Position numbers and translations under genes: made by a program. This document shows positions 133 to 39,163 of a DNA stretch of 64,000 nucleotides, one piece after another. The stretch comes from Pavona decussata (taxonomy: Eukaryota): the NCBI GenBank assembly GCA_977016875.1, contig CDRNST010000123.1:372001-436000 (forward strand). Reading direction: 5' to 3'. Under the pieces are notes generated by a model. The model was not told the origin of the DNA. It did no database searches and saw only the letters and a list, made by a program, of their open reading frames with translations. How positions within the stretch are numbered: the stretch's first letter is position 1; each line of letters starts with the position of its first letter.

Positions 133-1562
133 GACTGGTTGGCGTTTTCACAGAAAATTGCTCAGTTGACTTTCCAAGGAAAACTCCAGTTTGAAAATGG
201 TGGGGCTCCCCTGGAACAAGACAACTTCGCCTTCTGCAAGGTAATGATCATTCCTTCTTGTTTTGTTTTACGAACTTTTGAAGGCGATGAAAAAGCAAAT
301 CAGAGCAGAAAATGAATAAAGAAATAGTTTCTTCCTCAACCAACTACTCAGCATAGAGATTCGATTTAGCTCTCGGGAAATGTTGTTATTTGGAGATATC
401 AAAAGAGCGAGCTGATAACAGGATGGGGCGCTTATTTCTGTTTTGATCTCACACGTGAGAATGCCTGGACTGTAAACTGTAAAAATACCAGAAAACTAAA
501 GTATGACCTGTACAAGTAAAGCAAATCTCAGTTTAATCAGCTTCGCTCTTGCATTTTTCTTTGTGACAGGTGCTTAATTTTACTGAGAAATTTTATGCAC
601 CTCCTGTTGTCGTGGTAACAGTCAATCACCTATACGATAGCAAGAACGTGTACTCTGTTAAGCCGGAAAACAACGTCCTTAACACCTGGATAGAGGTAAG
701 TTATAATCATTCTTGACAAGTAGATTTTTCGGTCTATTTAATACAAGAAAAAAACCTTAAGAATCACAGTCACATGAATTTACAACCTTTAAATTACATT
801 TATGCGCCTTTGCGTTAGACACATTATCAAAACCTGGATCTTAGTAACCATTGCCTTGGTTTTGCTCCGTTTGCTGGGATGGAAGATGACATGACACCGT
901 TTGGCATATTTTGGCCACACACGTGGCCGTTTATTGTTAGCAAATAATGACATAATGAGAGAAGAATAACTCTAAATAAAGCTGTACCCAGCAAAGGTGA
1001 GGGGATACCCGCCACCGACCTAACCATGCTTACAAATTCTGTGGCTTTGAAGGGAGCTAGGGAGGGAGGGAAGTGACGAGTTTCCCTTGGATATGCTTAG
1101 TTCACTGTTGTATGATCTAGGCCAAAGAGGACAAATGATGGTCTAACCGAGCTTTATGTAGGGTAATTAGCTAGAGTATCTCCTTACTACCACCCGAACG
1201 GAAGCCACAGAACAGATGCACTTAAAAGGCGCATAAAATCATTTATTTGTTAAATAAATATCCTGTTAAACCCGGCAGTGTTCCATCAAGCTATTGACTT
1301 CGAAACCTTTCATTAGTTTCATGAAAAACACAAGCCATTCTCCTCGAGACTTTTCAAGTTTCATGAAAAAGAATTGTCTTCAACCTTGAAACCTTGCAAC
1401 AAGTTACTGCTTAGTACATTGATTGCCATTTTACTGATTTGAGTTCATTTCTGCTCTTATCACAGGAAACAACTATTTCTTATGTCCGCATTTGCATAAA
1501 AGACTTGGCAGGAATGAAGAGCCAACATGATCCGGTCAAAGTTGATTACGCAGTTATTGGAG
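133..1562 (+). CDS. Copy A: last three exons of first H-type-lectin-like triplet
   Basis: [20 protein letters not shown]...FAFCK / [20 protein letters not shown]...NTWIE / [14 protein letters not shown]...VDYAVIG. The F-x3-P-x-V, W-x-E, F/V-x2-C, V-x-W/Y-x-A pattern resembles the H-type lectin fold (family assignment inferred). Confidence 0.75.
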
Positions 1563-4500
1563 GTAAATAAGCAACATTATATGACAGTTTTACTTTCTGA
1601 TATTTTTTGAAGTCACCACGAAAGTCACCACGAAGTCACAATGAAAAAAGTACATGTATGTATTACTACATGTAAAAATGAAAATAACATATTTGAAATC
1701 ACTTACTTTTAAACATTCTGATTTTATTAATCCAGTCCTGTTACGAAACTTAACGAACGGACAAAAATGTCGTTTGTGACATAAGGTTAGCTAGAATTTT
1801 CGAAAAGCCAACAGCAGCTCAACTGGCAGATTTTGGGGATTTGAATCTGTTTGCTAAAATTTTGAGCCACTTTCAACAAAAGAATCTGAACAGATTAAAC
1901 GGCGTTTATAATAACAATGCTGTAAAACAGAAAACAGCATCCGAAGTTTTTCTTTTTGTTTGTTAAAATTCCTTCATTGGGTAAAACAGTTGAAATGGAC
2001 AAAAATTTGAAAGTTGTTTGCATGCAGAACATGACCCGGCCTTAGGTGAGGGGCCACAATCGCTTGGCTTCCAAGGAAACAACTACCAATCTATTTTTAA
2101 GTCTCGTTACATAACTTGCGATTTAATAATGCATTTTATAATTGTTTCTTTCGTTTACTTATTCCTTATAAACCCTCTAAAGTTAGAGTACTTAATTTGA
2201 GAAAAACAAAACAAAAAATTCTTTGCATTTCATGTTACAGATGTTGATCCGTGCATTAATGTCTCCTGTAAGTACTTTGCCGTTTGTAAGGCATTTGGTC
2301 CCAGGGACGCGCGGTGCATATGCGTGGATAATTGTCCGTCGTATGAAGAGCCTGTGTGTTCCTCTAATGGTACCACATATGACAACGAGTGTGTGTTCCA
2401 GCGAGAAATGTGCCATCTGAGAGGAAACTTCACTGTCTATCATCCGGGTGATTGTACAGGTAACATCACTGATTTCACTTCTTTCCCACAGCTGTAGATA
2501 AATTTGAAACAAACGTAAAGTGGACGATGACAGTTTATTGTTACACGAGATTCCAACAACACCGCAGCAACACCAAAACACACCATCTACGGTGTCCACG
2601 TCTGATAACAGTAGTCCCATTATAGGATTGAATTGACTTAGTGTTGTTAACTTTTTTGCAGGATTCCCTTCTCAAAAGGGCCGGCATCGCCTCCACCACA
2701 ATCCAGTTTGGGCTGAAGCGGTTTGTGAACAAGTTCCACTGGCTCCTTATGTCTTTTATCCTGACAAACCGGTTCACATACAGGTTTCTGTCAATCACGT
2801 GAACTTCTCAGATCCCTCATATGTCCATGAAGCAGTTGTTGCTTGGGTTGAAGAAATCATGGAGAACAATTTTACAGTTTGCGTTACACAGGCCGGGAGA
2901 AACGAGAAAAGAAATGGAGAAACGTTTGCAACTGTTGACTGGCTTGCCTACCAGGGGGCCCCTGACGGGGGAGTGTCTGGTGAAATGGACATGCCGACTT
3001 GGTGGACTGGAACGAGTTGTCGAACCGTCTCCCTTCCCTCGGTAAGAAGCTAATTGGTATTGGTTCATTTTTAAAACTGAGTTTCAAATTTTGATCTGCT
3101 CCGGTGGTTACAACACAAACCTTCGCACCAGCTTAGTCAGTGTACTGGAAGGTATATTGAACTTATAGACATAATGGGAAAAAGTACGGTCAATTAAATA
3201 ATTTCTCAACCCACAAATCAGAGACTTTCAAGATTCGAATTTAGTTTAGGCAGAAGATATTTTTTTTTACCGCTTCTATTTACATATAAACACTCATAGT
3301 GCCGTTAAAAATTAATCATTTTTTGTTGTCCTTGATTATAGAGCAAGTTTAAGTCGACGCCTACAGTTCTAGTGTCAGCGGAGCATGAAAGGCGTGGTGT
3401 AAAGCACGATGCATCTTCTGTGTGGTTAGAAGATATCACGAAAAATTCTTTTAAGATCTGCGTCCGAGAATTACAGAACTTTGATGGAGTTCACCAAAGT
3501 ATTTACGTTGTAAGTGGTTTTAGTTGTAACTCGTCTTATGATTTCCTCAAGTTCAAACTTCAACCGAGGCCCGTTGTATGAAAAACTGCATCCAATTTAT
3601 ACCTCTTTGTTGGACGGTACGGAAAAGACTAGATGAAAGGAAAACAATTGTTCTTGGAGTTTTTCTTGAAGCATACTCTTGATGTTTTCGATCCGTCTAT
3701 TTCATTTTATCACAAATGGAAATATGCTGCTTTCGATTTATACAGACTTGCACTGGGCATTCTTATAGAAAGATCACCATAGCTATTTTTTCTCTCATAA
3801 ACAATAACCTCTTGGACGGTTTACAAGTGACAACGTGATAACAAACAATGGCTTCTTTGCAGGATTGGATAGCGTTTGAAGAGCTTCACCGACCTCTGTT
3901 TAGAGAGCATGGAGCTATATACTTCTCCAATTCGAACAAGCCATCCCGAGATTTCAACTATGCTTTTTGTGAGGTAGGTAGGCCATTATTGCACTCACGT
4001 TTACAACCTCTGAAGGTCTTTAGACGGTAACGACTTCTTTTATAGATGACCACCCGCACGTCTGATCGGGAACATATGCACTTATCCGTTCACACTTGCA
4101 GTAGTGCCTACATTTGCGCATGCACCCTAACCCACTCATGCAGACAAACTTACGTATGCTAACACTCGCTTTTTCGTTTTTTTTTTTCTATTATTTTGCT
4201 CTTCTACTCTTTTTCTATCAGATGCACTCCTGCCCACTCATACATTCTCAACTTTTAATTTAATCAACCATTCATCTCTCCTTTCCCTATTTTGTCTCTC
4301 CTTTCTTATCTTTCTTCCCCGTTCTTTCATTTCTTCTTCCCTTCCTTTTGTTGTTTCATCCTATAGTTCATAATTGCTTGGTGGACTTTTTCAATTGTTT
4401 ATTTCATTCTTTGTTTGAAAATATTCTAAACTTACAAAAGGTTTGTTTTACCATCATGCACAAACAGTTGAATTTTCTTTCCTTTAGGATGTCGTGTTTA

Positions 4501-7500
4501 AGAAGCATTACAATGACTCTCCCGAAGTCTTGGTGTCAGCAAACCATTCAACAAGCGGAGGAAACCTTAATCCTATGTACAACTCCATTTCAGCTTGGGC
4601 TGAGGTAAGATAACAACGGCATTTGTAAGTTAATCTTAGCTTCACTTGTGTTTTGCGATGCACTGTAAGAGATGTGGGCATACAGTGTAGAGTGATCGTT
4701 AAGAGCTCGTTAGGCGAGAACCTTGGTTTGAGAATTGGTCCTAGCTTGCTGTCTCCTTTTGAACGGGTGAGGGTATTATAGAGGCGAGAACTGAGGTTGC
4801 GATAAACTGGCTTCCTATATAGGGAAGTATAGTTACCCTTTAGTGACTTTATGCCAAGAAAACGGGAGCTCATCTACGCCTTGATGGGCAACTTTAGGAA
4901 CAGACCAACTCTTAAGTTGTCTTTACGGTTGCATGTTACTAATTTCTAAAACATTTTATTTTTCGTATCTTTGCAGTACATAAACAAGACAGGCTTTAGA
5001 GCTTGTGTGAAGGAACTGTTTGTTCAACAACACGACCCTCTCTCAGTGTCTTATGCAGTTTTGCCAGGTAGGCTCTGAGTCATAGCTAATTATAAATAGC
5101 GCTGAAATTCTTCAACTACAAATCGATTCTCAAGAGAATGTTATTAGATGTATCAGATTTGATCTGCTTCTGTATAAAAAATTTCCCCAAGTCTAATTTA
5201 TCTTCTCATGCAAAAGTCCTCTTTTGAAAACAGAAAATTTTATTTCAGCCGGGACAAATATTATTCTCCTACGGAAAAGCTACTGCTAAGGAGGCAAGCC
5301 AAATTATGGGTTGGTTCACAACCTTAAAAGAATTTTAGCTTTTTTTTCCCTTTTTCGATTCGTGAAATAACTTTTTTGTAGCATTGGTCTGTCCTTAAAC
5401 ATTAAGGTAGCGACAACAGCTTCGTAGTTTAATTTATTACTTTATTTTTCAAAGATGTCTGTGAGCCCGGCTGGAGTTTCTACAATGGCTCCTGTTATTT
5501 CACCAGCGAAACATGTGAGACTTGGTCCAATGCAAGTATAACCTGCAGAGCCATGGGCGCTAATCTAGCTGCTATTGAAAACCAGGAAGAGAACGTATAT
5601 ATCCAGCACAGGCACAATGGTGACAAGGCGTGGATCGGTTTAAATGACATTGCCACAGAAGGATTGTTCAGCTGGGTAGATGGATGTCCTGATAAATTTC
5701 GCTACTGGGCTCAAAACCAACCAAACGACTTTAGAGGGGAGGACTGCGTTCACACCCTGGGGGCAGGGCATGGGTACATGTGGAATGACGTGGATTGCTC
5801 TGCCTGTCATCAGTACACATGCAAGAAAGGTAATCAGAAATTAGTTTCTGCCCAACTAGATACATTACCTTCCACTATACTGAGAGTAATATATATTCTC
5901 GAAAGAGACTCTAAAAGAAACAAAGAGATACTATTATTGAATCGGGGGAGATGGGTAGGGAACGGGGGAGGAGAAGGAGGAGGAAGGAAATGGACTTTCT
6001 TATAAGCTGATTAGACTTATGTTTTTTTTTTCTTTTATGTCATAGTAACAATTAATTTCCTTTGAATGCAACTTTCAAACATCTTTCTGCTCAGATTATG
6101 ACGACTGCAGCAGCAATCCGTGTTTGAATGGCGGCACCTGTGTGAACGGCAAAAGGAGATTTACTTGCGTCTGCTCTCGGACACACAAAGGAAGGACATG
6201 TGAAGGTAAATATACAACTCAGTTTTCTGATTTCTCTTTGAACCTATTACGCCTGGGATTTTTCTGAGTTTCTGTGTCAAGGCTGCTCCACCATCACCAC
6301 CGGATCACTAATAACTTCAAGAGTATTGAGAGTGTGACTTCAAACCTTGGAGGATACGAAGTGTTTCCATATCTATTTCCTTTGAGGTCCGCAAAATGGG
6401 ATGCTGACCGCATATGACGTGGATATCACGTCGTTTAACTGCACATCCGCAATATTGGTTTCTCAATTCAGAAAACCATCCGAAACTGATCTCAAAGTCA
6501 TGGAAACCGCTAAACAAAAGTTAAAATAGGTCAAAAATGTGTAAATGTTGCGAGGATAAACTAAAAATTTTTATTAAAAAGTAAGAAATCCAAAGTTTGA
6601 AGCATGGAAATATCAAGTCATTATAAACATATTTTTGCCATTTGATGAAAAGTTTGGTGTTGGTTTCCTTGATATTAAGGACGTTATGAACGTTCAAATC
6701 AAGCGCAGCTACTTTGTGCATCGCAGACATTTAATTGTGCCGTCAAAAGGAGATCCGACAATAAAATTCTTATTTTTTTATTTGTATTTTGTTGTTTTAT
6801 TTTTGTTTTGTTTTCATTATCTAACCTTTTGAAAGCGGACAAAGTTGGGCCGTGCTATATTTTTCTGTTATAGGGATGGAAACTATTAATTCTAATTATT
6901 CGTTGACTTTTTAACGTATTTATTGCCTTTCAGAGTTTGACGAATGCTCGAGCAACCCCTGTATGAATGGAGGCACTTGTACTGATGGAAACAATAACTA
7001 CACATGCGCATGCCCTTCACCGTATTTTGGCAAGCAGTGCCAACGTATGTACAACAAAATGCTTTTAATCATACAAAATATAGATGAGGGATGTTTAGTT
7101 CCATTATCCGTTAAGAACCTTGCACAACTGATGTTCAATTTTGGGGGATGACTTTAGTCTTAGCAATATCTATACCCTCGTTTATTTCGGGAAATAAGGC
7201 TTTCAGTTGCAGTAGCTGCGTTTTGCCGTAAAAAAAAAAAAAAAAAAACGGTTATTTATGATGTGTAAGTTTTCCATATTAGCCAAATTTTGATCGGTTT
7301 GTTGACCAAAATGTACGGATTTTTTGTGTAAAATTCGCTGCTTTGCAATTATTTTGGAATTGTTTTGGATATTGCCTTCCATATTGGCCGATCTAACTGA
7401 AATTTTAAAATACTCTGTAGCCGTCAGGGAGGCATGCGCATGTGATGTGAGCATAAAGTATGTAAAACCTCCTTTAAGACATTCTCGACCCCAGAGCCTC

Positions 7501-9208
7501 TCGGCTTTGACTACGTCATGCGCCAAGGCTGTAGGAAACTCTGCGCAAGACAGCTTTAGAGTAACGTTCCCTAAATTCTTATTTTACAGATACGGATGAA
7601 TGCATATCCAATCCATGTCTAAACGGAGGAACTTGTATAGATGGAGTGTACAATTTTACCTGTGTTTGTCAAGGCGTTTTCATCGGGCATAGATGTGAAG
7701 GTACTTTGTAGAATAGCACCAATGAAATAAGCCGTGTGGTGTTTTATATTCCATTGACCTGAAATGTGTGAGGAGTTATATAGAAGAGTTCAGGAAATCG
7801 TCATTATGATGTTTAAGGTCAAACACAAAGTATAATCTCCGTGAATTTGCTATTTAAATTGTGGAACAACTGAGTTCTTGGGAGAAGTCAGAACTTTACC
7901 CACATAATGATTGTTCAGTTCTAAAACCGCATTCGTAAATGCGATCTTTAGTAAGTTTGTTGATAGATTAGGATAATTGTTCAAAATGTATAGCTCATAA
8001 TGTAAAAATTTCTGATCAGTTTTATGCAATGCGCTACAATTTAAAATTCGTTCAAGTTTGAAAATTTGATAGCAATTAAGTTGATAGTTCTCTTTTAAAA
8101 TAAATCATAGGTGACCCAGTTAGTAAAGACTGACATTGATTGTCTCAATGAAAAAGAGGCTGAAATCATTTTTTTGGAAAACCTTGGCCAATTTTTTTCA
8201 AGTTGCAATACATTTCCATTCTGGCCTTCCCCTGAGTACCAAGGAACTCTCAGAAACTCGTTCAAAGTGTCCTTGCTTCCAGGTCGAATCAGAATTTGGA
8301 AATGTCGGTTTTTGTGGAGGGAGGAGAAGCGAAGTATAAGGGGAGAAACCCTGGGATTAACATCGAAAAGCGTGGAAGAGTGACAGGCACTGTAATTGAA
8401 ATGCAGTGTACCAGCACAGTAACAGTAACAGTGTGCAGGCACTGTAACTGAAATGCAGTGTATCAGTTCAGGTGCAACAGCTGCGTCATTAACAATACAT
8501 TGGTAGCACAACACGCTTTTTCCATGACCGCGTAAGAGAACATATCAATAACGATAACTCCTCCGTTAAAAAAAAAAAAAATATCTCTTCCTGCCAGAAC
8601 AACGACTATAAAGGCATTAATATCAAGATTATTATGAGCGAAAACGATCCCGCTAATCTACGCCTCTACGAAGCATTTTACATTAGAAAATACAAGCCCA
8701 CACTCAATTCACGAGTGGAATGTACTGAATTCGCAGACCTTCTACTTTAATATTGTATTTTAGAGACTACTCTCATACGCTTTTATAGCCCACAACCATC
8801 ATCAAAAAAATTTGTATTCCACTCACAGTTTATTTCTATAGCTTTCACACATACGTCACATTTTTTACACATTTCACCTTTCACCCTACACTCTCTTTGC
8901 GTATGATATATAGCGTGCGCGGAATATTTTCTTATCCCTGATGATGCCGTTGATCGGAGAAAGCTTGGATTTTAGTTTTTACTTTTAAACAGCAGTTTCA
9001 GGCCTCATTAGAACAGTTTTTATATATTCTTAACCATGCTGCTAAAGGACAACATGAACAGATTACTGTAAAAATCGATGACCCAATCAGAAATCGAGCA
9101 TAATTTCCAGGAAAACAATTTTAATTTCCGCTAGAATATGCCCGTTATTTGGATGTTGACTATTTAACAATTATTCCGCGAGCGCGCGTTGGATATGAGA
9201 TGATTGAT

Positions 9209-13456: not shown

Positions 13457-14677
13457 AATGCAACTCACTCAGCAAAAGAACGAACTACTGGCTTCCCGAC
13501 CCCCTTCCCCCTCCTTACAATTTACACTTAGGGATATCACCTAAGTTGGACAGCATCTGCTATGCAATACAGCCCGCATGCATTTCATTGTAAGCAAATC
13601 ATCTTGGCCACATAATATAAAAACGCAATGGAAATTCCTTTCAATTCTTGACTCAGTACGTTCACGTGATGAATAGGTCTCATTAATGAGCATTAATTTA
13701 ACCAAATTCGCGCCCACCTTATGACGTACCCCCACCTGGACTTACAGACCAGACCATCCTTGACGGCATGCCCCCTATGAAATAATCCGCCATACTTGGT
13801 GGAGCACTGCCTACGGCAGTGTTCCTACTCGAGTTCCCGAGTATAATTTGTCACCTTTTTCAAAATTCCTGGCTTATTTTTTTTATTGTTAGAAAATGTA
13901 GCTATGACTTCCCAATTCAGACGCCAGCATTCTACATTTATGCATCATTCCAGCTTTTGTGTGATTTCTTAGCTAAACGTAGTTCGTAAAATTGGTTTCA
14001 TGCAAGGTACTCAACGATTCCTCTTTGTGCTTTAAGGTCTACTGTGACATGTCCAATGGTGGCTGGACTTTAATCTCACGCTATTCGAATGCTGACACTG
14101 CAAACTGGATGCAGTACAGCGGCAGCTGGTGGTATGACCGAACAACATCGTACGGTAGCGTTACCAGTCCATCAAACAACTATGACATGATATCACCCGC
14201 ATTCTGGCTCGTCCGAGGCAGTTACATTAAAATAACCCGCAGTGATGACAGCTCTAATACAGCCTTGTTGTACCTAGCGGTTGCACAGGTGGAAGAACTT
14301 TCAGAAGCTTTATTACCGGTTTCGGGAACTTTAGATATGGTAACATCTGGAACAGCGACGCATGCCGTGGATCCTGTTATGCATACTTTGGGGGACGCTA
14401 TTCATCAACAGTGGGTTTCAGCCATGCATCCTGCAGCAGCAATCTTCAAAGCTCTTCTTATCTGTCATTCTGGTGTGACTGGGGTGGCGGTGACGGAGCT
14501 GTGATGATGATTGGTGGTGGAGGTGATTATTGCAACAGGGCGGATCATGGGATTGGTATCACAGAGGCTAATCGGGCTCGGTTCGGATCCGGCAACCTCG
14601 ACTGCGGCGGCGATGATGACTTTGGTGATGACTGTACCTCTCCGACTGGTTATTCTCTCAATCTGTGGATAAAGTAG
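133..14677 (+). CDS. Multi-lectin gene copy A (5' part upstream of window): H-type-lectin-like repeats, follistatin/Kazal, CTLD, 3x EGF, fibrinogen-like domain; frameshift in terminal exon
   Basis: Exons with AG/GT boundaries and consistent phases: 133-240, 570-695, 1466-1562, 2241-2459, 2662-3041, 3342-3509, 3863-3973, 4488-4604, 4977-5067, 5455-5829, 6095-6205, 6934-7044, 7590-7700, 9670-9761, 14037-14677. Each has a colinear homologue in copy B. The frame is open until a shift near 14273. Confidence 0.88.
799..1237. mobile_element. Possible MITE in copy A intron
   Basis: 13-bp inverted ends TTTATGCGCCTTT / AAAGGCGCATAAA; not seen in the copy B intron. Confidence 0.45.
2241..2459 (+). CDS. 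Copy A: follistatin (FOLN + Kazal) exon
   Basis: [56 protein letters not shown]...YHPGDC; 10 Cys; PVCxSNGxTYxNxC motif; phase 1-1. Confidence 0.92.
2662..5067 (+). CDS. Copy A: second H-type-lectin-like triplet (5 exons)
   Basis: Three repeats containing [20 protein letters not shown]...[30 protein letters not shown]...DWIAF and [21 protein letters not shown]...VSYAV. Confidence 0.8.
5455..5829 (+). CDS. Copy A: C-type lectin domain exon
   Basis: [13 protein letters not shown]...WSNASITC...[10 protein letters not shown]...WIGLND...WVDG...WAQNQPND...EDCV...WNDVDC...YTCKK. Confidence 0.95.
6095..7700 (+). CDS. Copy A: three 111-bp EGF-like exons (6095-6205, 6934-7044, 7590-7700)
   Basis: D-D/E-C-x-SNPC-x-NGGTC...F/Y-TC-x-C...G-x2-C; all phase 1-1. 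Confidence 0.93.
8510..8985 (+). mobile_element. Penelope-like element 3' fragment (GIY-YIG C-terminus and terminal repeat)
   Basis: [17 protein letters not shown]...[17 protein letters not shown]; downstream CTGATGA...GAAA motif. Confidence 0.75.
8933..8970 (+). ncRNA. Minimal type I hammerhead ribozyme-like motif
   Basis: ATCC...CTGATGA, stem II CCG/CGG, GAAAGCTT, GGAT; lies in a PLE terminal repeat. Confidence 0.5.
9162..9460. repeat. Palindrome-ended non-autonomous repeat (Crypton-type, tentative)
   Basis: AACAATTATTCC...GTTGGATATGAGATGAT / ATCATCTCATATCCAAC...GGAATAATTGTT hairpin of about 115 bp. Confidence 0.6.
9670..14677 (+). CDS. Copy A: fibrinogen/intelectin-like C-terminal domain (exons 9670-9761, 14037-14677), frameshifted
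   Basis: [18 protein letters not shown]...[15 protein letters not shown] is a fibrinogen-like N-terminal motif. Homology to copy B moves to another frame at TACCTAGCGG (14271-14280). Confidence 0.85.
10923..11305. mobile_element. TTAA-flanked MITE (Kolobok-like)
   Basis: TTAA|AGGGACAGTATCA...TGATACTGCCCCT|TTAA. Confidence 0.75.
11990..12380. repeat. Head-to-head pair of tRNA-related repeats (foldback)
   Basis: Arms 11995-12128 and 12250-12375 are diverged inverted copies; tRNA-like GTAGAGCA...GGTCGTGGGTTCG at about 12195-12255. Confidence 0.6.
13380..13456. repeat. (TTAC)n microsatellite, tail of a LINE-like 3' end
   Basis: About 19 perfect units directly after AATAAAATTG. Confidence 0.95.
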
Positions 14678-19994: not shown

Positions 19995-22408
19995 TGTAGT
20001 ATGTTGTCGAAGACTTTATTTCATCCGACTCCTGCACACAGGCCACGTGTGCTTTCTGCATTTACATAAAACGTGTTAGCCTACTTAAATATGCGTATAC
20101 AAAATATAACATATAATAGTTGCTAATTAGCACATGCATGCTGATATGTTACATCCCCTTCTTTTAAAAAGCTATGTTAATTGAAACGAAAACAAACAAA
20201 ACAAAAACATTCATTCGAAAAGGGTTCACTGTCTAGAGATCATACATCATACTAATAATATCTACTAAAACAAGAGTCAGAGGTTAAGTCTTTCTGGTGC
20301 CTGGACTTCACGTCCCGAGCGAGATTTTTCTTGGACCCCCCTCGGTTTCCGCTAAGGTGGAACATTGTGGATTGGCGCTTGAGGGTCGTGCATTGCTTCT
20401 TCTCTCGTGGATTGGCGCCTGAAGATTGCGTAGCCATACTTCCTTGGGGAATGTAGTTAGACAAGTTGTTTGCCAGATTGTTGGAAGCATTGTTTGGTCT
20501 AAGATGGATCCTATTTCTTCGTAGTTGGGCACCAGCTCTAGTTTGTACAATATATGAGCGGGGTGTGTTTCCTTGATCTATGACTCTAGCACGGCTCCAC
20601 GTTTTTCTCACTGGATCTTGTGCAAAGATGGCATGGTCCATGTGTATTTTAGGGAGATCCCTGGTATGCCTGTTGTAGTAGTAGCTCTGATTGTCTTGTC
20701 TCGCTTTGTGCCAATCTCTAACTTCTTCTTGGTTCTTTGATGGTCCAACAGTACCATTGAAGCATTCTGGGTACATCTCCATCAGTTCTTGCTTATTTCT
20801 GATTGGTGGCCGCTCTTTGAGTGGTACTTGACTTTCGATGTAATTCGGGCGTTTCTTTCGAGTACCTGAGCTTTGAGCTGGGGTCACGAAGCTGTTTGTC
20901 GGAGCAGCCTGGTCTAGTTGATTTGTCTTGAGTGAACAGTGTAATGAGATTAGTTTCAGTGCCGTGCATGCCTTTAGACCGAGAATAGCTGGCCCTGGAG
21001 TATCTGTGACGTAAAAAATGCAGTTTATCTTCTTCTCTTTGTACTTGCAAGGGATGTTTATAGTGCCAAGCTGCTTGACTATAGACCCCCCGTATGCTGA
21101 AAGGACGGCTTTGTTCTTTTCCAGTGCTTCTGGTTTGGGATTTCCTTCGTCGTCAAACTTCTCTGGGGCGATTATGCGCAGTAGCCTTACGGGTAAAACA
21201 TTGCTCTGTGCGCCCGTATCTACTTTACATTGAAGATTAATTTTCCGCTTCTTTTCTGGCTGAGTTATCTCAAGTGTTGCAAAGGCTTCGTCGCGTGTGT
21301 CGTGTATCGAGTGTTGCGTGTCTTCTATGGCGTTAACCTCGATGCTACGGATTGTCAGAATTTCATCGTCGTCGTCGTCGTCGTCTTTATCCTCAATCGC
21401 GTGAATAACTTTTTTGAAGACCGACTTCGTTCCTTGGTTAAGTTGTTTCCGTTTGCCGGATCGGCAAACAGATTGCCAATGATTAGCTTTGCCACATTTT
21501 CGACATGATGTGCCGTAGGCTGGACATTTGTTCCTCGGGTGTTGTTTTCCACAGTTGTTACAGAACTCCCTTTCTTGTTCCCTACGAATGGCATTAATAC
21601 TCCTGTCCTCTTGGAAGTTTCTGCTACTTCCTGCTAGTGTCTTCATGTGTTTACTTGTTGCCTCGTGGCTCCTTGCAATCTCAATAGCGGCCGCAAGGGT
21701 TAGTGATTTGTCTCGACTTATGAGAGCCTTTTGAACATCAGGATTTCTCGATCCCCAAATAAGCTGATCTAGGACTCTGTCTTCAATTTCGGCGTTGTCG
21801 CGAAATTGGCACTTTGCTGCTAGATTTTTTAATCTTGAAATAAAATCATCCACTGGCTCGCCTTGCTCTTGTCGTATTCCTTGAAGCGTGTATCTATGAA
21901 TTCGATGACTTTTTTTTTGGCTCCAATTGATTTTCGAACCGTTCGAAAATAACGTCCGGCTTTTTCCTGTCTTCCTCCTTTGCGAATGCCCAGCTGTTGT
22001 ATATATCCAAGCCTTTTTCTCCTGAACAGAGTAGGATGTAGCTCACTTTTTCTTCGTCGTCGGTGCCTTTGAGAACGCTTGAAAACATAAGCTGGCATTT
22101 TTGTTTGAATCTTGCGAATGCAGTTATTGGGTCAGGGGCGTCCCAGTCCATCTGCGGCGATGCGAAAGGCGTTGCTGCTGTCATCATTCGCTTGTATTGA
22201 CCTCTCTCTACTTAACTTTAAGGATTATTCTTGTAAAACGCTGCCACCATGTAGTATGTTGTCGAAGACTTTATTTCATCCGACTCCTGCACACAGGCCG
22301 CGTGTGCTTTCTGCATTTACATAAAACGTGTTAGCCTACTTAAATATGCGTATACAAAATATAACATATAATAGGTGCTAATTAGCACATGCATGCTGAT
22401 ATGTTACA
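19995..22408 (-). mobile_element. Ty3/Gypsy (Mag-like) LTR retrotransposon, internally deleted (no RT/RNase H/integrase core)
   Basis: 159-bp TG...CA LTRs (19995-20153, 22250-22408; 2 mismatches); 5-bp TSD ATAAC; PBS TGGTGGCAGCG (tRNA-Leu-like); PPT AAAAGAAGGGGA; gag and protease on the minus strand. Confidence 0.95.
20252..22187 (-). CDS. gag-pro: Gag-protease fused in frame to integrase C-terminal tail; +1 frameshift in an A9 run near 21910
   Basis: Tandem zinc knuckles CNNCGKQH..C and CRKCGKANHWQSVC; protease VDTGAQSN; then YYNRHTRDLP...PRSYIV...RRNRIHL (integrase C-terminus). Confidence 0.88.
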
Positions 22409-24504: not shown

Positions 24505-27025
24505 TTTATTTATTTATTTATTTATTTATTTATTCACCACGACATACAAACATAGAAAGTTACAATGAATAATAGACTAGGATTACAAGTACATAAGTTT
24601 AGAGTAAATAAAAAATAGTAAAAGAAGTAAGAAGTGGCGAGGAGACCTCAAGAAACCCCCGGGCTTATACTGAGAGGTCTCCTCGGAGATATGTTGGGAC
24701 TTAAAGACCAGTAAAGACATTGTGTTGAGATTTTTTAACATACGGTGGTGGTAAGACTATAAAAACATAACAGAGTCGGACGTTTCATGCAATTAACTGA
24801 GGAAATCAAGAAGCTTTCTTTTGAAGGTGGATAGACTAGGGGAAGACGTAATTGATAATGGCAAAGCATTCCATATTTTTGGCCCTCTATAGAGTATAGT
24901 AAATTGCTTGATATTAGTTCGGCAGGTGTGAGGTCGAAAATGAGCTGAGGTTCTGGTATCATAATTATGAATTTGACCACCAGTCGGAAATAAATTTAGA
25001 AAGGGCGAAGGCAGCAAACGTTGGTGATAGGAAAACATAAATTTTGCAATATAAAAGGAATTCACTTTAAAAATATCTAGGATATTCAGTTGTGCAAATA
25101 AAGGTGCAGAAGGTGCAAGGTGATTAGAATTTGTCATAGCTCGCACAGCTCGTTTTTGAAGAAGAAAAATGCGATTTAAGTTTGTTACATAAGTAGAAGA
25201 CCAAACTGTAGTACAATAAGTTAAATAGGGATAAATTAAGGTATAATACAAAGATTTTTTAGTGTTTGATGACAAAAGGAAACGAAATCTGTACATTATA
25301 CCAACGGACTTAGAGATTTTCTTGCAAATATAACTGATATGCGATTTCCAGGTGAGACCTTCATCAATATAAATACCTAAGAACTTAACTTCTGTTACTT
25401 GCTTGAGGGGTATACTGTCAAGTGAAATTTGGGAGCTCATGCGGACAGATTTTTGTTTGGGTTTAAATATAACATAATTGGTTTTCTTTATGTTAACAGA
25501 AAGTTTGTTTGATTTCATCCATAAGCTAATCTTAGTCAGTTCACTATTCATTACAGAGGCAACATGATCAGGGTCTGAATTGGAGTAAAAGATACTAGTG
25601 TCATCTGCAAAGAGCAGGCATTCTGCCAGTCTGGTTGTTTTGGGAAGATCATTGATATATAATATGAAAAGTAAAGGGCCTAATATGGAACCCTGTGGAA
25701 CACCGCATCTAATTATCTGTTCGGAGGAACGGGTATCGTTGATCTGGACGAATTGGGTACGGTTGGAGAAATAACTTTTAATCCATTGCAATGCTAGTCC
25801 ACAGACACCATAATGTTCAAGTTTCTCAAATAAGATTTGGTGGTCTAGCGTGTCAAACGCTTTAGAAAGGTCAAGAAAAACACCTGCCGTGATTTCATTT
25901 TGGTCAATGGACGTTGCAATTTTATTAACAAGGTAAGTTAGCGACAGCGCAGTGGAATGGTTTTTACGAAAACCAAACTGGAGTTGGTAAAAGATATCAT
26001 GGCTATTTGCGAATTCTACTAGTCGATTGTGCATGACCTTTTCGAAGAATTTCGAAAAATTAGGAAGTAGTGAGATTGGTCTGTAATTAGTGAATAAATC
26101 CGGTTCATCACCTTTAAATACAGGAATCACTTTGGCAAGTTTTAGCTTGTCTGGGAATATTCCTTTGGAAAAGGATAAATTAATAATATTCTTAAGAGGT
26201 TCCGATACTACTTCAAAAGTGTTTTTGATAACATACATAGAAATATCGTCATATCCTGGGGCTTTCCCAGACTTCATGGACATACAGATTCCATTCAGCT
26301 CTTCAACAGTCGTCGGCTTCAAAATCAGAGACTCATTGATCTGATCATTCAAAAAAGAGTGGAAAGAAGAGTTCACCGGAGGTATTTTCGCTGCTAAATT
26401 AGGTCCTACGTTAGCAAAATAATTACAGAATCCATTTGCTATTTCTACAGGGTCGGTAAGAATGCTACCATCAGATCTAAATGACGAAGGAAAAGGAGGT
26501 CTACATTTACGCTTGTTGATAACTTCATTGATTAATTTCCAGGTCTCCTTTAGGTCATTTTTAGCCGAAGCAAACCTTTGGTCATAATAATGGCGTTTGG
26601 CAATTCTAATGAGATGGGTTAATTTGTTTCTGTAAGACTTATATTGTAACTCCCTCGTTGGATTAGGTGATCTCAGTAATTGTCTATACAGCTTGTTTTT
26701 CTTTCGAACAGAAGCTAATAAAGATTTGGTTATCCATGGGGAATAAGGCCTTTTACAATTCTTAACTTTATGAGGCTTCAATGGGAAACATAAATTATAA
26801 AGCCGCGAATATTCGGACAAGAATTTATTGTAAGAATCATTGGGGTCTTTATCATGTAGAAGTTCAGTCCAATCGACTTGAGAGAGGCGAGTTTTGAAAT
26901 TATTTAAATTTGCCGTAGAGAAGTTTCTCACAGGTCGGTTGCCAATTCTTTTATGAACATGAACAAAAGAGTCATCAGAGACATACGCAAATACTGGTAA
27001 ATGATCAGATATGTCACTTATATAA
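24505..27025 (-). mobile_element. 5'-truncated LINE of the L2/CR1 group (Crack/Daphne-like)
   Basis: ORF2 begins at the endonuclease end motif SDHLPVF; 3'UTR hairpin (GAGGAGACCTC...GAGGTCTCCTC); (TAAA)n tail at 24505-24535. Confidence 0.92.
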
Positions 27026-27036
27026 CTCATGCCCAT
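24793..27036 (-). CDS. LINE ORF2 reverse transcriptase (747 aa, uninterrupted)
   Basis: Motifs KAPGYD, NYRPISLL, QFGFR, FLDLSKAFD, GVPQGSILGPLLF, LFADD, KFLGI. Confidence 0.95.
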   Translation of the reverse strand: MGMSYISDISDHLPVFAYVSDDSFVHVHKRIGNRPVRNFSTANLNNFKTRLSQVDWTELLHDKDPNDSYNKFLSEYSRLYNLCFPLKPHKVKNCKRPYSPWITKSLLASVRKKNKLYRQLLRSPNPTRELQYKSYRNKLTHLIRIAKRHYYDQRFASAKNDLKETWKLINEVINKRKCRPPFPSSFRSDGSILTDPVEIANGFCNYFANVGPNLAAKIPPVNSSFHSFLNDQINESLILKPTTVEELNGICMSMKSGKAPGYDDISMYVIKNTFEVVSEPLKNIINLSFSKGIFPDKLKLAKVIPVFKGDEPDLFTNYRPISLLPNFSKFFEKVMHNRLVEFANSHDIFYQLQFGFRKNHSTALSLTYLVNKIATSIDQNEITAGVFLDLSKAFDTLDHQILFEKLEHYGVCGLALQWIKSYFSNRTQFVQINDTRSSEQIIRCGVPQGSILGPLLFILYINDLPKTTRLAECLLFADDTSIFYSNSDPDHVASVMNSELTKISLWMKSNKLSVNIKKTNYVIFKPKQKSVRMSSQISLDSIPLKQVTEVKFLGIYIDEGLTWKSHISYICKKISKSVGIMYRFRFLLSSNTKKSLYYTLIYPYLTYCTTVWSSTYVTNLNRIFLLQKRAVRAMTNSNHLAPSAPLFAQLNILDIFKVNSFYIAKFMFSYHQRLLPSPFLNLFPTGGQIHNYDTRTSAHFRPHTCRTNIKQFTILYRGPKIWNALPLSITSSPSLSTFKRKLLDFLS

Positions 27037-27278
27037 GTCAATCCTCCGGCCAAACCTGTATTAAGTGGACACCCTCAGGACCCTTGCTTATTACAGGGTG
27101 TCCGCAGAAAACTGGCTCCCTTAGAATTCGTCTTAAAAGGGTCATATTAACATTCCTCAGCATTAAAAGGCCTTGAAAGGATTAAATACCATTCCCGTGA
27201 ACGGAAAGGTGTTTGGCAGACCGAAAACCAGATCGAGTTTATTCACCAGCAGAAAAGCCTACAGATCTTATGGAAGTA

Positions 27279-30312: not shown

Positions 30313-30671
30313 GACAAATTGTGTTCCAGCAAGGAAAGGTCAACTTCACTGTGTCATATCCTGACTTGGTCCATTGCAAAACCGTGCAATACCCTCAGGT
30401 ATTTTCCAGCTCTGGCAATATTCGTGTTCTTGCATCTATCAGCCATGAAAATGAACCGCCCAGTGTTCATGATTTAGCAGTAGTGTGGACCGCCGAAGTG
30501 ACGCAGAATAATTTCCGCGTCTGTGTGTTGGAATCAGGAATTGGTTCAAATGGATCTGTTGTTGTGAACTGGGTTGCGTTTCGCGGCACGCCTTCGGGAG
30601 CACTTGGCGGCACCGCCTCCTTCAATGCATTCACCAGCGGAACACAATGTGAAAGGGTTGATTATGCACAG
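30313..30671 (+). CDS. Copy B exon 2: first H-type-lectin-like repeat and start of second
   Basis: QGKVNF...CKTVQYPQVF...HDLAVVWTAEVTQNNFRVCV...VNWVAFRG...FTSGTQCERVDY; internal paralogue of exon 39692-40071. Confidence 0.85.
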
Positions 30672-31849
30672 GTATGACTCCCATTTGATAAGTTAATGAA
30701 GAAAAACTTCATTAAACACAAAGGAAGTAGCATATCAATTGGAGAGCTTTTCTTTTTAGAATTTGGCATTAACAATGACCAGCATACCTCACTACCTGTT
30801 CCATCCCTGTTCCATAAGTACTTGTAAATTAAATCGCTCAAAAATAAGAAGGTGGTTGCTTTGCCATTTAATTAAAACGTCTCGACTCGTTAGTCGAAAA
30901 AACAGACAGAAAACAATTCCAGCTCACATTTAAGTCGTATTTGGCAAATACCCAAGAGCAGTGTTATTCGTGTCTCACGCCAGTTTGGATCTTAAATTCC
31001 ATTTCGTATGAATCAACTATAAACAGATTCACTGACCTTCAAGATGACAACTGCCTACTCCGAGCCAAACCCCTAAACACCAAGTGACCAGTAGTATTAC
31101 TACTCCCCTCTGGAGAAAATGTCAATCCATCGCATGGTATCCCCGAGCGGAGTAGGCAGATACATTAATGATGGCGAGTAGCTAATGCCCTGCATAGACT
31201 TTGAGATTAGCATGGCTTGTAACTCTTTTGGTTGTTCTTTTCCTCCAGGGAACCTTTTTTTTTTGGCGTCTCCACAAAATGATACAAACTGAAGATGATT
31301 GATTTACCATCTTTCAACTAAGCACTTAAGTCTATTCGGATCAAAAAATACCTTAAGATGCAGAAACCAGGGTAAATGGAAATTCTTCTTTGACTTTGAG
31401 TTTAATAAAACAGTTTGGTGGCCCTATTGTTTTTAGAGCAAACCTTAAGAAAGATGATTTGTTTAAATCAGTTTAAAGGTGTCCGACGCTTTTACGAAAT
31501 TCCGCAAGACTGAGCAGGAGAATTGTTTTATTATTCAACACATTGCTAACAAAGCGCAGGTTTATAGAAAAAAGCTGGAGGCGATCTTTATTTGTTAAAA
31601 AAAGAGAGTTTTAACACTGATTTGACCGGGCAAGGACGCGCATGAATGAAAGTGGTTTGACAGATTTATTCATCTCAAAACATTTTAACGCATTTATTCA
31701 ACATAAAAAATGCTTAGAAATGTTTTACTCGTGATAACTGGAACAAAACGGAAGTGTAAAACAAAAACGTTTCTACTCTAAATAGTTTACACGTCCTATT
31801 AAAGGGTTAAATGAGGGTTTCTAAACTTTCTTTGTAACTCAGTAGGAAA

Positions 31850-32740
31850 AAACAAGGGGTGATAGGCCTGCGCGACTTTTAACAATGGAAACATTTTTTA
31901 TGTGTAACTTTTTTATATTTTTGCTCCGACAAGCATATCATTTGGAGATTTTCCTTTTTTGAAGGAAATAAGTGGTTGCTCTTTGAAGATTTCTCTAAAA
32001 AATGTTTGAGGTTGGGCACTGATGGTTGGTATTGTGTTACAAAAGGCAATATTTGTCTGGGGGTGTTGTCTCAGTTTGCTTCAATGCTGATGACCTTTCA
32101 GTAAATTTGACATCTGATAAACTTTTTTCAATCAGATTATTTGGGTAGCCTCCAGCAAGGGTCGTGATTTAATTTTTTAATTATTTTCCTCAAATGTTGT
32201 TTTTGAAGAGTTTGTTCGTAGGCGTCTTAGGGCTTCGCCATTAACAAATCCTTTCTTGTCTCCTGGTGGATGGCTGGAGGAAAAATGCGTGTATTGAAAG
32301 GTTTCAGTCGGCTTGAAATGTGTTTAAATATCCAGAATGGAATGACGATGGAATCGATTGCCTTTGTATGCAACTGTATCCAGAAATGTAGTCTCAGCAT
32401 TTGAGATTTCAGCCGTAAATTTGATAGTTGGATGATATGAGTTTGCTTGTTCAAAGAACCGTTCTATATCGTGTTTATCAGTGTCCCACAGAAACAAGAT
32501 ATCGTCAATGTAACGTTTTCAAACTGTAGGTTTTACGACGCTTTGGTTAACAATATTTGTTTCAATGCCGGCTATAAAAATGTTTGCCCATGGCTGTACC
32601 ATGGATGTGGAGGTAATTCCTTCTATTGAGTTGAAAAGAATATTCTCTGAGAATGACTGTTGGAATTTCTATCAGGTACATGTATGGGGTGCGAATGGGA
32701 GGGTTGTTGCTGTGAAAATTATCGTATGCTTTGAAATGAA
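31850..32740 (-). mobile_element. Degenerate Penelope-like RT fragment
   Basis: KAYDNFHSNNPP...NYLHIHGTAMG, RYIDD, HPTIKFTAEIS...FLD, KPTETFQYTHFSSSHP across frames. Confidence 0.8.
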
Positions 32741-32849
32741 TAAATCTGTCAAAGTTAATGCATTTCCACACACTTAGCATTTTCAATACTTCTCATCTAC
32801 TACACTCCGTACTCCGCATTCCTTATTTTCCGTCCAACCAGCTTCCTTC

Positions 32850-33350
32850 AGAAGTTTTAATGAAATCGAGAGCGTGGATCGCACTTGCATCAAAATTGCG
32901 TACTCGTCTAGTACGCCAACAGCTCTGGCAAACATTTCCACAAAGTTATAGCCTGAAAACAAACATTATTTTGAAGTTGCGAAAGATTTGTTGTGTCAGC
33001 TGGGCCGAACGGAACAGAAAAAGTTTTGCAACGATTTCTCGGGTGAGTGTTTCTTTGTTTTCTGCGCAAGCATTTCACCATCTTTCCTCGGTGTTTTGCC
33101 GACAATTGAAACGCTTCCAGTGCCTTGTTGCTCTCAAGAACTCTGGATCTGTTATGATACTAAACGGTTTTATACAGCCAGCTCTAATTCTTCTAAGAGT
33201 AATTGCTTTGTACTCTATATTTTTGTCTACCAGAGAGATAAAATTTCTCGAGGCACTTTGCGAACTCGGTTTTCTCAGGTGGTTTTCTCCATTCCTTCGA
33301 GACGAGTCAAGAACTCTGTTTGATTGTTTCGAGATGAGGAATCAATCTAA
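32850..33350 (-). mobile_element. Degenerate Crypton-like (DUF3504/KCTD1-related) fragment
   Basis: FAKCLEKFYLSGRQK, KPFSIITDPEF, LTREIVAKLF, GPADTTNLSQLQNNVCF across frames. Confidence 0.6.
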
Positions 33351-34319
33351 GAAAATACTGTTTGTAATTTCTGAGCCTTTACTAGAATACGGGATAATAC
33401 AAAAGTCTAGCGAAAAAAACAAACAAAAACAAAGATGCCCCCTAATGGCATTTACACGGAATGCTTAATGTAGCCTCATTAATTCCCCATTGTATGCTTC
33501 GCAGATTTTTAAAAACTATCCTCCCTTCGCAATTGAAATAATTGAATGATTTTATTCAGAGAGACTGCGTGATATTTTATCGTTGTGTTACTGGAAATCA
33601 TACCGGAAATTACTATGCCATAACGTTATAACCCCCACTTGAACTGGTCTGGTTTCCTTCGCCTTGAATTATTCGATCTGTTTGTGAAAGTGTAGTTTCT
33701 TCGCTGTGAACTCTCCCAATTTCCACCGTTTAAACTGTCGAGTACTACTTAGAAGTTATTTTTTTCGATTTACTGCTTGAAAAACGTTTCTTTTCTTTCT
33801 CAAAACGGCAGATCAGAGTCTTAAATTCATACATGTGGCCGCCATTGACGCTGCATTGAACGAAAACAACCTTCTAAATGATGATTTGCTTTCATGTCAC
33901 ACAGGTAGAGATGACTGGGTCCCCTCCCTCGTGATATACGCGCCGATAATGGATTTTGATTGGGCCGGTTTTGTTTAAGACAATCAGAACAACAGATCCC
34001 TTTTGGGAGAGGGCAGAATTTAATGAAGGTTCAATGAATAAATCAAATAATCAGATTTGACGTCACACAGGAAGGAATGAGTGAGGCCCCTCTCTCGAAA
34101 TATGTGCCTAAATAATAGATTTTAATTGGGCCGCTTCTGTTGAAGACAATTAGAACAATACATCCTTACTAGGAGAGGGGAGAGTTTAATGCATAAATTA
34201 ATGTGCAAATTTGTGGCTACAATGAAGAAAAAAAAAACAAGATGCCTATACTGGCATTTACGCGTGATGCTGTGGCTGATTCATGCCCTGAGGGCATCCC
34301 GTGTAAAAAGGTAAGCAGT

Positions 34320-35350
34320 AAAAGTTTTTGCACTAACCATTACAAATCTTTACAGCAAACTTGGTTGTCTTGGTTGCGTTTTATGAAACATGTACTTGCG
34401 AGGTCGTTACTTTTTGAAAGCGCTCTGCCATACATTTTTCTTCCCGACACACGAAATTACGTATATCGCAGCAGAAAAGGTCTACGACCAAAATATTGAA
34501 AACTATGAACCGGAGGCAGTCAACAAAATTCTCGGGGATTTCCACGCAACAGTGCGTAAAGAAGACGGGAAAGACTATACGAGCATGGCAGTCTTCGCAC
34601 TGCAATTGAACGTTACCTAAGAAGGCAAGGTTACAAATACTCCACAATTAGAAACCGAGAGTAAAAAGGTTCGAAGCAAGTTCTTGAAGGTAAAGCTCGA
34701 CTACTGCGACAACAAGGTTAGCTTAAAGTCAAGCGGCTGAACAAGTCTCAGAAGTCTGACAAACACTGAATTAAATGAGCTGTTGTAAAGCAAAACGCTT
34801 TGAAGCACAAGTTCTGGTACAAACGGTTTGGTAGTTCCTGACTCAATATTTTGGCGTAGAGCATCATGTTGAAGATTTTCATGTCGGCTTGGACGAAAAC
34901 AAATATGAATTCATTGAGAACCAGGTTAAAACACGCCAGTCTGGACTGTCTGCAAAGCCCCGGCTCCTAAGATCCAATCAGTTCGAAAACATGCCGAGGA
35001 CGGTGATCAGACTTCAGACTTCTTTTAACATTGACCTAAAATTATGCTTTGTGATTTGAAAACTTGCTCTTTTTAGAGTGATGGTATTTTTAACATGTTT
35101 TCCGTACGTATGATGTATGTCAATCGAGCTTGTCATTTTTGAAACCAATCAAAGACATGTAGGCGGAGCATTAGCTGACGGACAAGAAATAAACAAAAAC
35201 TCATTTGAAATTTTTGAATGTATATTATTAACAAGTAATCACATGATTTCTCTCGTGCAATTTGGAATAAATAAGCACTTGTAAAATTTTAAAAGGCCAC
35301 AAATTGCACTCGCCCTGCGGGATCGTGGAATTTTGTTAGCCTTTTAAAAT

Positions 35351-35381
<31 letters not shown>

Positions 35382-35405
35382 TCGGAATCATGTGATTACC
35401 TATAC
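34320..35405 (+). mobile_element. Degenerate Crypton-like fragment with terminal palindrome (35232-35405)
   Basis: IENYEPEAVNKILGDFHATVRKEDGKDY...AIERYLRRQGYKYS...QVLEGKARLLRQQG; ends in a hairpin of about 170 bp. Confidence 0.7.
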
Positions 35406-35409
35406 AAAT

Positions 35410-35740
35410 TGTTACCCAGACGGACTGACAACAAATGATTTCTTGAAGAAAATAGGCATCAGAAAAGATAATATGTGCACCTTTTATTGAGGTGGAAAGT
35501 ATAGTCCATCTTTTTTGTTTTTGCGAGGCGACGCCCTGCAGATCTGGCGGTGTTTCAAGCATGGCTTATCACCGAAAAAGCATGACAGATTTAAAGGCTA
35601 TCAACCTTACTCCAGTCATAATATTGGGCTTAAATCCTCATTCTTTTAGAAAATAAATAGGTGCACCTCTTTCCCTTAATTGCAAGCTATTTTATTTGAT
35701 TTAGCAAAATGCAGGATAAGGACCCTGATATACAAAAGCT
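35410..35740 (+). mobile_element. Old L1/Tx1-like LINE 3' fragment (similar fragment about 52270-52660)
   Basis: TNDFLKKIGIRKDNMCTF...ESIVHLFCFC zinc-finger remnant. Confidence 0.55.
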
Positions 35741-36013
35741 TTTTTTTGACTTTCCTAACCTCCTTCCTGTGATGGGAGGTATCAAATTGTCTCGTATAAA
35801 TTGCCTCTCGATTCACGAAGTTAAAATATACTCTCAGCCATGCTTCCTCAAGCCATGTAATTTTTTCCTCCTAAAATTTAATTTAATTTTCCGCAAAAAA
35901 GGTTCTGTGTTGTATTTATTTGACGTGCTTGCTTTAACTGTGGTGTGACAGTAATAGCGTCTCAACTGTACTGCAATGCAAGTATAAAATAATTAATTTA
36001 AAAAGGATCGGGA

Positions 36014-36145
36014 ATATTGTCAGTATTGTAAGTAATGTAGGTATTGTAAGTATTGTTTAGTGTCAGCATTGTTAGTATTGTACGTGTAGTAAGTATTGTC
36101 AGTAGTGCAAGTATTGTTAGTATTGTAAGTAGCTATTTAGTATTG
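36014..36145. repeat. Degenerate 9-10-bp minisatellite (AGTATTGTNA)n
   Basis: About 13 units. Confidence 0.85.
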
Positions 36146-39050: not shown

Positions 39051-39131
39051 GGACGGTGTCCACTAATACTGAAACATTTTTGCGCGGTTTATGACTATGC
39101 GGGAAAAGCAGATCTTTGCAAGGGCTATTGG

Positions 39132-39163
<32 letters not shown>

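Follow-up and report, generated by a model that had tools for sequence, protein, structure and literature searches.

Can one polypeptide chain take the place of the homotrimer that free H-type lectins such as HPA, SLL-2 and the discoidins assemble from three subunits? The question is raised by a gene of the coral Pavona decussata, located in a 64,000-nucleotide stretch of a 602-Mb eukaryotic assembly (contig C123, positions 372001-436000; referred to here as the window); two neighbouring upstream pieces of DNA are denoted L003 and L004. At window positions 2662-5067 this gene encodes a block of three diverged repeats. An earlier reading of the sequence alone, called the sequence-only reading below, had proposed that H-type-like domains occur here in triplets, twice, and that each triplet folds as a pseudo-trimer within one chain. 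The analysis presented here indicates that the block is probably the second of two H-type triads in a secreted mosaic lectin resembling LePin of the soft coral Xenia, with each triad being one pseudo-trimeric folding unit and a putative glycan-binding module.

Organization of the gene

The block at 2662-5067 (block 2, forward strand) consists of five exons of 380, 168, 111, 117 and 91 bp, all of which are bounded by an AG acceptor and a GT donor. The introns on either side of it are in phase 1 and the four within it in phase 0, and it codes for 288 residues that make up three repeats of 98, 91 and 99 residues (R1, R2 and R3). The same five-exon cassette is found further upstream as block 1 (359/165/108/126/97 bp), of which the first two exons lie upstream of the window. 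The sequence-only reading had described block 2 as just such a cassette with three diverged repeats of about 95 residues, and its exon lengths are exact; it had also recognized the cassette upstream but left the length of one exon blank, which is now filled by the 165-bp exon. A signal-peptide-like exon, MRLSTDFQLLATLLILGTLSCLVEG, is present upstream in L003. As read from the exons (Table 1), the order of the predicted protein is signal peptide, three H-type domains, Kazal, three H-type domains, C-type lectin, three EGF domains and a fibrinogen/intelectin-like end. The EGF and fibrinogen-like exons were located through the listing of open reading frames; a tblastn search with longer relatives revealed no additional conserved exons past the C-type lectin domain.

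Both blocks, the Kazal exon and the C-type lectin exon all have phase-1 edges. The introns occupy identical positions in the two blocks, and the phase-0 introns inside the blocks split the repeats. Because phase-1 introns are found only at the block borders and phase-0 introns cut through the repeats, the block, and not the single repeat, would be the shuffled module.

Assignment of the repeats to the H-type lectin fold

The six repeats are recognizably related to one another, with z-scores of 3 to 43 in pairwise local alignments compared against 200 shuffles. Repeats at the same position in the two blocks share 32-36% identity, compared with 18-27% for repeats inside a block, which argues that the repeats were triplicated before the block was duplicated. 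Two cysteines and one tryptophan are present in every repeat and are nearly invariant across 32 aligned blocks from many proteins. A histidine in the loop between strands 5 and 6 is found in R2 and R3 of both blocks and is absent from R1.

With exon 1 as the query, 324 relatives were retrieved from among 1.84 billion representative proteins. The closest is a hypothetical protein of the stony coral Oculina patagonica (KAL9984804.1, referred to here as P0001), which begins with a signal-like peptide and is 84% identical to the spliced model, rising to 87% in block 2. Pfam scans of single exons give only sub-threshold matches to H_lectin (PF09458; E 0.008-0.06, 13.9-16.8 bits, compared with the curated cut-off of 24 bits), at consistent profile positions, and repeat 1, which lies wholly inside one exon, has no Pfam H_lectin match. 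The full-length P0001, in contrast, reaches 68 bits, and the cut-off is likewise exceeded by others, among them P0151 and P0168. A search of the whole genome with PF09458 gave no matches, and neither did control genomes; this result is uninformative because the introns split the domain. In the predicted model of the homologue described below, each repeat has six strands and forms an antiparallel β-sandwich that can be superposed on HPA, SLL-2 or discoidin. The Pfam matches of full-length relatives and the predicted fold together support the identification of the repeats as H-type lectin domains, and with it the earlier claim that these occur in triplets, twice in the same gene.

Predicted structure of one triad

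The sequence folded was block 2 of P0001 (residues 382-673), for which an alignment of 32 triplet blocks was supplied to AlphaFold2. The resulting model has a mean predicted local distance difference test score (pLDDT) of 92.1 and a predicted template modelling score (pTM) of 0.91, and all five models reach a pLDDT of at least 91.6. It contains 18 strands, six per repeat, and the linkers that lead from the final strand of a repeat to the opening strand of its successor are only 6-9 residues long. Such a prediction for one block had been put forward with the sequence-only reading as a means of distinguishing a compact body from beads on a string; run on the Oculina homologue, it gave the former.

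The Foldseek list of PDB entries contains many of the PCSK9 C-terminal domain, and discoidin II has the highest probability; an exhaustive VIA-align search over 48,161 representative PDB chains was needed to find structural matches. Single repeats match discoidin I (PDB ID: 2w94; Z 6.0, 81 residues aligned), HPA (PDB ID: 2ccv; repeat 3, Z 5.7, 91 of 99 residues, root-mean-square deviation 2.4 Å) and SLL-2 (PDB ID: 3wmp; repeat 2, Z 5.7, 85 of 94 residues), all three within the top seven of the 48,161 chains. Single repeats also match the end domains of phage tailspikes and pyocin fibres. The whole model aligns over 174-202 residues (Z 3.1-5.4) with herpesvirus dUTPase-like proteins, the PCSK9 C-terminal domain, a single-chain C1q head (5hzf), the Cbln1 C1q trimer (5kca, a construct fused into a single chain) and a single-chain APRIL-BAFF-BAFF trimer (4zch). 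The PCSK9 C-terminal domain consists of three β-sandwiches with a resistin-like quasi-threefold symmetry, and the dUTPase of Epstein-Barr virus is a monomer that mimics the trimeric enzyme. The whole-model neighbours of the triad, despite their modest Z-scores, form a very specific class, in which one chain imitates a homotrimer of β-sandwiches.

The three-domain shape is also found among predicted structures. In the ESM Atlas, the entire 292-residue model matches a cnidarian Kazal/H_lectin cluster with a template modelling (TM) score of 0.90, and TM scores of 0.71-0.75 over 249-263 residues are obtained with clusters, the majority of them H_lectin-bearing, from Bacteroidota, Planctomycetota, Pseudomonadota, Bathyarchaeota and Mucoromycota. 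Since these matches span bacteria, archaea, fungi and cnidarians, the shape appears to recur widely in predicted H_lectin proteins. The search of the 48,161 PDB representatives brought up no solved single-chain H-type trimer.

The model thus supports one triad as a compact intrachain pseudo-trimer. Of what the sequence-only reading had claimed for the single block, the compact body (pTM 0.91) and its pseudo-trimeric architecture hold at the level of prediction.

Comparison with known trimeric architectures

The homotrimeric H-type lectins (HPA, 2CCV; SLL-2 of the octocoral Sinularia, 3WMP; discoidins I and II, 2W94 and 2VME) share with the Pavona block the six-stranded β-sandwich domain of about 95-100 residues and the Pfam family H_lectin, and the whole HPA chain fits onto one repeat. 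They differ in that their trimers consist of three identical chains with the sugar bound between protomers, whereas the Pavona block has three diverged domains, 22-27% identical, in one chain, and their sequences in the PDB have no detectable match to the Pavona repeats. The single-chain mimics of homotrimers (the PCSK9 C-terminal domain, the monomeric dUTPase-like proteins of herpesviruses, and engineered single-chain C1q and TNF-family heads) likewise have three β-sandwich modules around a pseudo-threefold axis, but are made from other domain folds and have no sequence relation to the block. With Z-scores of only 3.1-5.4, the likeness to these proteins is one of architecture and not of family. 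The bacterial, archaeal and fungal H_lectin proteins of the ESM Atlas superpose on the whole three-domain block, but belong to other kingdoms and have other partner domains (fusions with glycosyl hydrolase, reprolysin and MACPF); with predictions on both sides, the resemblance may reflect homology or convergence alike.

The triad as an evolutionary unit

Repeats were counted in the 43 relatives of at least 270 residues. Three repeats are present in 15 and six in 12 of these, i.e. exactly three or six in 27 of 43; among the relatives with four or five are some that are evidently truncated or that have an undetected stretch as long as one repeat. When R1, R2 and R3 are mapped as labels onto a maximum-likelihood tree of 78 repeats, 5 changes are required, compared with 37 for shuffled labels. 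The anthozoan R2 and R3 clades are well supported, and subclades specific to block 1 and block 2 are common to Nematostella and the stony corals; hence the 3+3 design would predate the split between sea anemones and stony corals.

Proteins from metagenome contigs of 1-6 kb (P0058, P0086, P0090, P0107 and others) have three or six repeats and no Kazal domain. The repeats of these metagenome proteins also cluster by position, which suggests that the triad is older than the anthozoan proteins.

Fourteen paralogues in the Pavona genome have an open block 2 of 867 nucleotides with the same exon lengths. The mean numbers of non-synonymous (dN) and synonymous (dS) substitutions per site are 0.016 and 0.175, respectively, a ratio of 0.09. 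Diversifying selection in the loops of block 2 was considered and rejected, the dN/dS ratio among the paralogues being 0.12 in the loops as compared with 0.09 overall. Taken together, repeat numbers, tree and exon structure support the view that the triad behaves as one evolutionary unit.

Relationship to LePin

Kazal, EGF, C-type lectin and H_lectin domains are all found in the one predicted secreted protein, which is the domain set that characterizes LePin. Two of the three published 15-residue antibody peptides of Xenia LePin can be aligned with repeat 3 of block 2 in the right order; they score 46 and 47, compared with maxima of 40 and 37 among 300 shuffles. Judged by its domains, the gene is a scleractinian LePin-like secreted lectin, a family membership that the sequence-only reading had missed; the family and the domain fold were already known. 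Among the relatives, P0168 and P0171 have the complete order of three H-type domains, Kazal, three H-type domains, C-type lectin, three EGF domains and Fibrinogen_C, and P0014 (A7RGA2) of Nematostella and its cluster mates consist solely of two triads joined by a Kazal domain. Correspondingly, the closest Nematostella relatives of LePin are described as being without C-type lectin and EGF domains (Hu et al., bioRxiv 10.1101/2022.12.13.520278).

LePin marks the endosymbiotic cell type of Xenia (Hu et al., Nature 2020, PMC7332420). According to the later preprint, this lectin is secreted, binds to algae and helps alga-containing cells to form (bioRxiv 10.1101/2022.12.13.520278). Xenia LePin resembles the Pavona protein in being secreted and in combining a signal peptide with domains of the H-type lectin, Kazal, C-type lectin and EGF types; the Pavona gene adds the fibrinogen/intelectin-like end and is a member of a tandem array of at least 15 copies. 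The H_lectin boxes of the Xenia LePin publications are taken from CDD, and LePin homologues are likewise treated as domain boxes only in a 2026 Palythoa preprint; in the accessible text of these papers, neither an arrangement of six repeats as 3+3 nor a built-in trimer is described. No account of tandem, triple or pseudo-trimeric H-type lectins came up in literature searches, and searches for the Nematostella accession numbers found nothing. The single-chain trimer arrangement of H-type lectin domains therefore appears to be undescribed in the literature searched.

Putative sugar sites and alternative interpretations

In the arrangement that we favour, three six-stranded H-type β-sandwiches, connected by the short linkers seen in the model, would pack around a pseudo-threefold axis, and a single chain would reproduce the trimer that the free lectins assemble. 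The three ‘subunits’ of such a trimer, now encoded as separate sequences, would have diverged in a position-specific manner, and because they diverged separately, the grooves between domains would no longer be equivalent. The sugar site of discoidin is located between neighbouring H-type domains and requires a tryptophan and a tyrosine (DscA W235/Y241; bioRxiv 10.64898/2026.06.18.733164). By analogy, sugar binding at the interfaces between the repeats may be inferred for the triads, and the occurrence of the loop histidine in R2 and R3, but not R1, is compatible with non-equivalent sites without being proof of them. The triads would then be glycan-binding heads, with which the secreted protein, in analogy with H-type lectins and Xenia LePin, could hold glycans of microbial or Symbiodiniaceae surfaces; the C-type lectin and fibrinogen-like domains would add further specificities.

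Several observations weigh against this interpretation. The best-conserved positions of the repeats are core cysteine, tryptophan, phenylalanine and alanine residues, with no obvious sugar-binding residues among them. Pfam sees just two of the six repeats in P0001. When exon 2 and a 51-repeat profile were used to search the sequences of the PDB, they returned only chance matches, none of them HPA, SLL-2 or discoidin, and Foldseek of the block model against the PDB gave no match below E 0.001. The structural Z-scores are modest, all being below 8. The three-dimensional arrangement is a prediction throughout, made on the 87%-identical Oculina homologue and not on the window's own spliced protein, and AlphaFold2 and ESMFold, which share training data, could carry a remembered trimer packing over onto tandem repeats.

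It is conceivable, if somewhat unlikely, that the triads are true pseudo-trimers but do not bind sugars in the classical manner, serving instead as a rigid scaffold or a protein-binding module, with glycan recognition left to the C-type lectin and fibrinogen-like domains. The structural nature of the conserved positions would fit such a role, as would the lack of a sequence match to solved sugar-binding H-type lectins in the PDB searches and the strong purifying selection on block 2, which has no variable loops in the 14 paralogues. On the other hand, the H-type fold family is known mainly for Gal/GalNAc-type lectins with interface sites (bioRxiv 10.64898/2026.06.18.733164), Xenia LePin itself binds algae (bioRxiv 10.1101/2022.12.13.520278), and the histidine of the strand 5-6 loop is retained in R2 and R3 of both blocks. 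Any lectin function of the Nematostella homologues, moreover, must rest on the triads, because only H×3-Kazal-H×3 is present in these proteins.

The sequence-only reading went one step further and proposed that the two blocks give a pseudo-hexamer. One way to build it would be for the two triads to bind to each other, clasped by the Kazal domain, as a single-chain counterpart of the hexamers of HPA and SLL-2. HPA and SLL-2 are reported to be hexamers, as that reading stated, and the linkers on either side of the Kazal domain are short. A model of both blocks with the Kazal domain (650 residues, 13 aligned sequences) again has 18 strands in each block, with a pLDDT of 82; its pTM of 0.59 is somewhat above the value of about 0.45 that we roughly estimate for two independent rigid bodies in 650 residues, but does not place the blocks confidently relative to each other. 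A single triad is present in 15 of the 43 relatives, which argues that a triad works without a partner triad and that a pseudo-hexamer is unlikely to be obligatory. The pseudo-hexamer is therefore not borne out by the model, and we regard it as improbable.

It seems equally doubtful that the repeats are an ordinary tandem array of independent H-type domains, strung like beads and acting separately or in trimers between chains, with the compact model as an artefact: tandem lectin repeats are common among invertebrate lectins, the packing is a predicted one and the Z-scores are modest, but a pTM of 0.91 across three domains, linkers of 6-9 residues, a copy number held to three or six rather than any number, position-specific clades kept between sea anemone and stony corals, and introns that split repeats and respect only the block borders all speak for the triad as a unit.

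Gene copies and neighbouring sequences

The gene (copy A) belongs to a tandem array that repeats about every 33.5 kb, and at least 15 further copies are located on contigs C123 and C88. The coordinates of the exons and of the copies within the window are collected in Table 1.

Table 1. Exons of the LePin-like gene and copies of the gene in the window. Positions are those of the window unless L003 is given; E-values refer to the Pfam family named.
Feature	Position	Strand	Length and phase	Remarks
Block 1 exon 1	L003:6932-7290		359 bp	
Block 1 exon 2	L003:9239-9403		165 bp	
Block 1 exon 3	133-240	+	108 bp, phase 0-0	Last strand of repeat 2 and start of repeat 3; AG/GT; tblastn 97% identity to spliced model
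Block 1 exon 4	570-695	+	126 bp	Middle of repeat 3; AG/GT; weak H_lectin match, E 0.032
Block 1 exon 5	1466-1562	+	97 bp, exits in phase 1	End of repeat 3
Kazal-type exon	2241-2459	+	219 bp, phase 1-1	Between the blocks; Kazal_2, E 2.6e-11, 43.9 bits; splice sites present
Block 2 exon 1	2662-3041	+	380 bp	Whole repeat 1 (codons 2664-2957) and first 28 residues of repeat 2; 96% identity to database fragment P0002
Block 2 exon 2	3342-3509	+	168 bp	Core of repeat 2; H_lectin, E 0.0078, profile positions 9-52; splice sites present
Block 2 exon 3	3863-3973	+	111 bp	Final strand of repeat 2 (3863-3883) and beginning of repeat 3; alignment with Xenia LePin peptide NKNHPTSENNYAYCK
Block 2 exon 4	4488-4604	+	117 bp	Middle of repeat 3; H_lectin, E 0.062; Xenia LePin peptide KHNTSNNNVDPKYNA aligns
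Block 2 exon 5	4977-5067	+	91 bp, exits in phase 1	End of repeat 3
C-type lectin exon	5455-5829	+	375 bp, phase 1-1	Lectin_C, E 1.4e-18; splice sites present
Three EGF-like exons	~6097-6207, 6943-7053, 7592-7702	+		EGF, E 6e-9, 7.5e-10 and 7.5e-7
Probable last exon, fibrinogen/intelectin-like	13983-14674	+		Two overlapping frames; weak Fibrinogen_C match, E 0.0017
Copy A	Starts upstream of the window	+		
Copy B (blocks 1 and 2, Kazal)	30315-42353 and beyond	+		tblastn with copy A model
Copy C	Starts at 63949			tblastn with copy A model

The fibrinogen/intelectin-like exon of copy A is apparently frameshifted, being covered by the frames 13983-14501 and 14258-14674; in the upstream neighbour, the corresponding exon (L004:8831-9529) is one open frame of 233 residues. 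At the other end of the gene, a near-identical second copy of block 1 exon 1 is located about 4.8 kb upstream of the one used here, with TAG instead of CAG as its last codon. Duplicate 5' parts are found at L003:2013-2426 and L003:1393-1529, about 8-10 kb before the window, and include a second signal-peptide-like stretch. The second exon 1 and the second signal-peptide-like stretch point to a local segmental duplication of the 5' end of the gene.

In copy B, a conserved tryptophan codon in block 2 exon 3 (40878-40880, last strand of repeat 2) is changed from TGG to TGA, copy A reading GAT TGG and copy B GAT TGA; the other 14 copies examined are open at block 2. Copy B may be a pseudogene, or the TGA may be an assembly error. 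When copy B was searched by tblastn with the model of copy A, nothing that corresponds to the 165-bp exon 2 of block 1 was detected at 30671-36382; this exon may have been lost or have strongly diverged.

Between the gene copies there are long open frames on the reverse strand at 20255-22042 (596 residues) and 24796-27060 (755 residues), which look, as judged by eye only, retrotransposon gag/pol-like and reverse-transcriptase-like. The D8C_UMOD domain (PF23283, uromodulin-type), which is present in the relative P0010, has at least 150 matches above the cut-off in the genome, many of them in dense tandem arrays such as that at C20:4.55-4.84 Mb; none of the matches listed is on the contig of the window.

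Implications

Few coral proteins have been linked by experiment to the uptake of symbiotic algae. LePin is one of them, but in the published domain maps it is drawn with scattered H_lectin boxes only. Reading these boxes as two built-in trimers names the unit to express, to crystallise and to put on glycan arrays, and predicts asymmetric binding grooves, which are impossible in a homotrimeric lectin. As the same module is found in the predicted structures of many unrelated H_lectin proteins, the built-in trimer may hold for the H_lectin family at large. We put forward only tentatively, at somewhat less than even chances, that the three-repeat block is an ancient, self-contained single-chain trimer module distributed from archaea and bacteria to fungi and cnidarians, and that its three grooves, now non-equivalent, are the actual sites at which LePin-like proteins recognize algae or microbes. 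If this were true, an ancient trimer module with non-equivalent recognition grooves would provide a structural handle on the selection of symbionts by corals.

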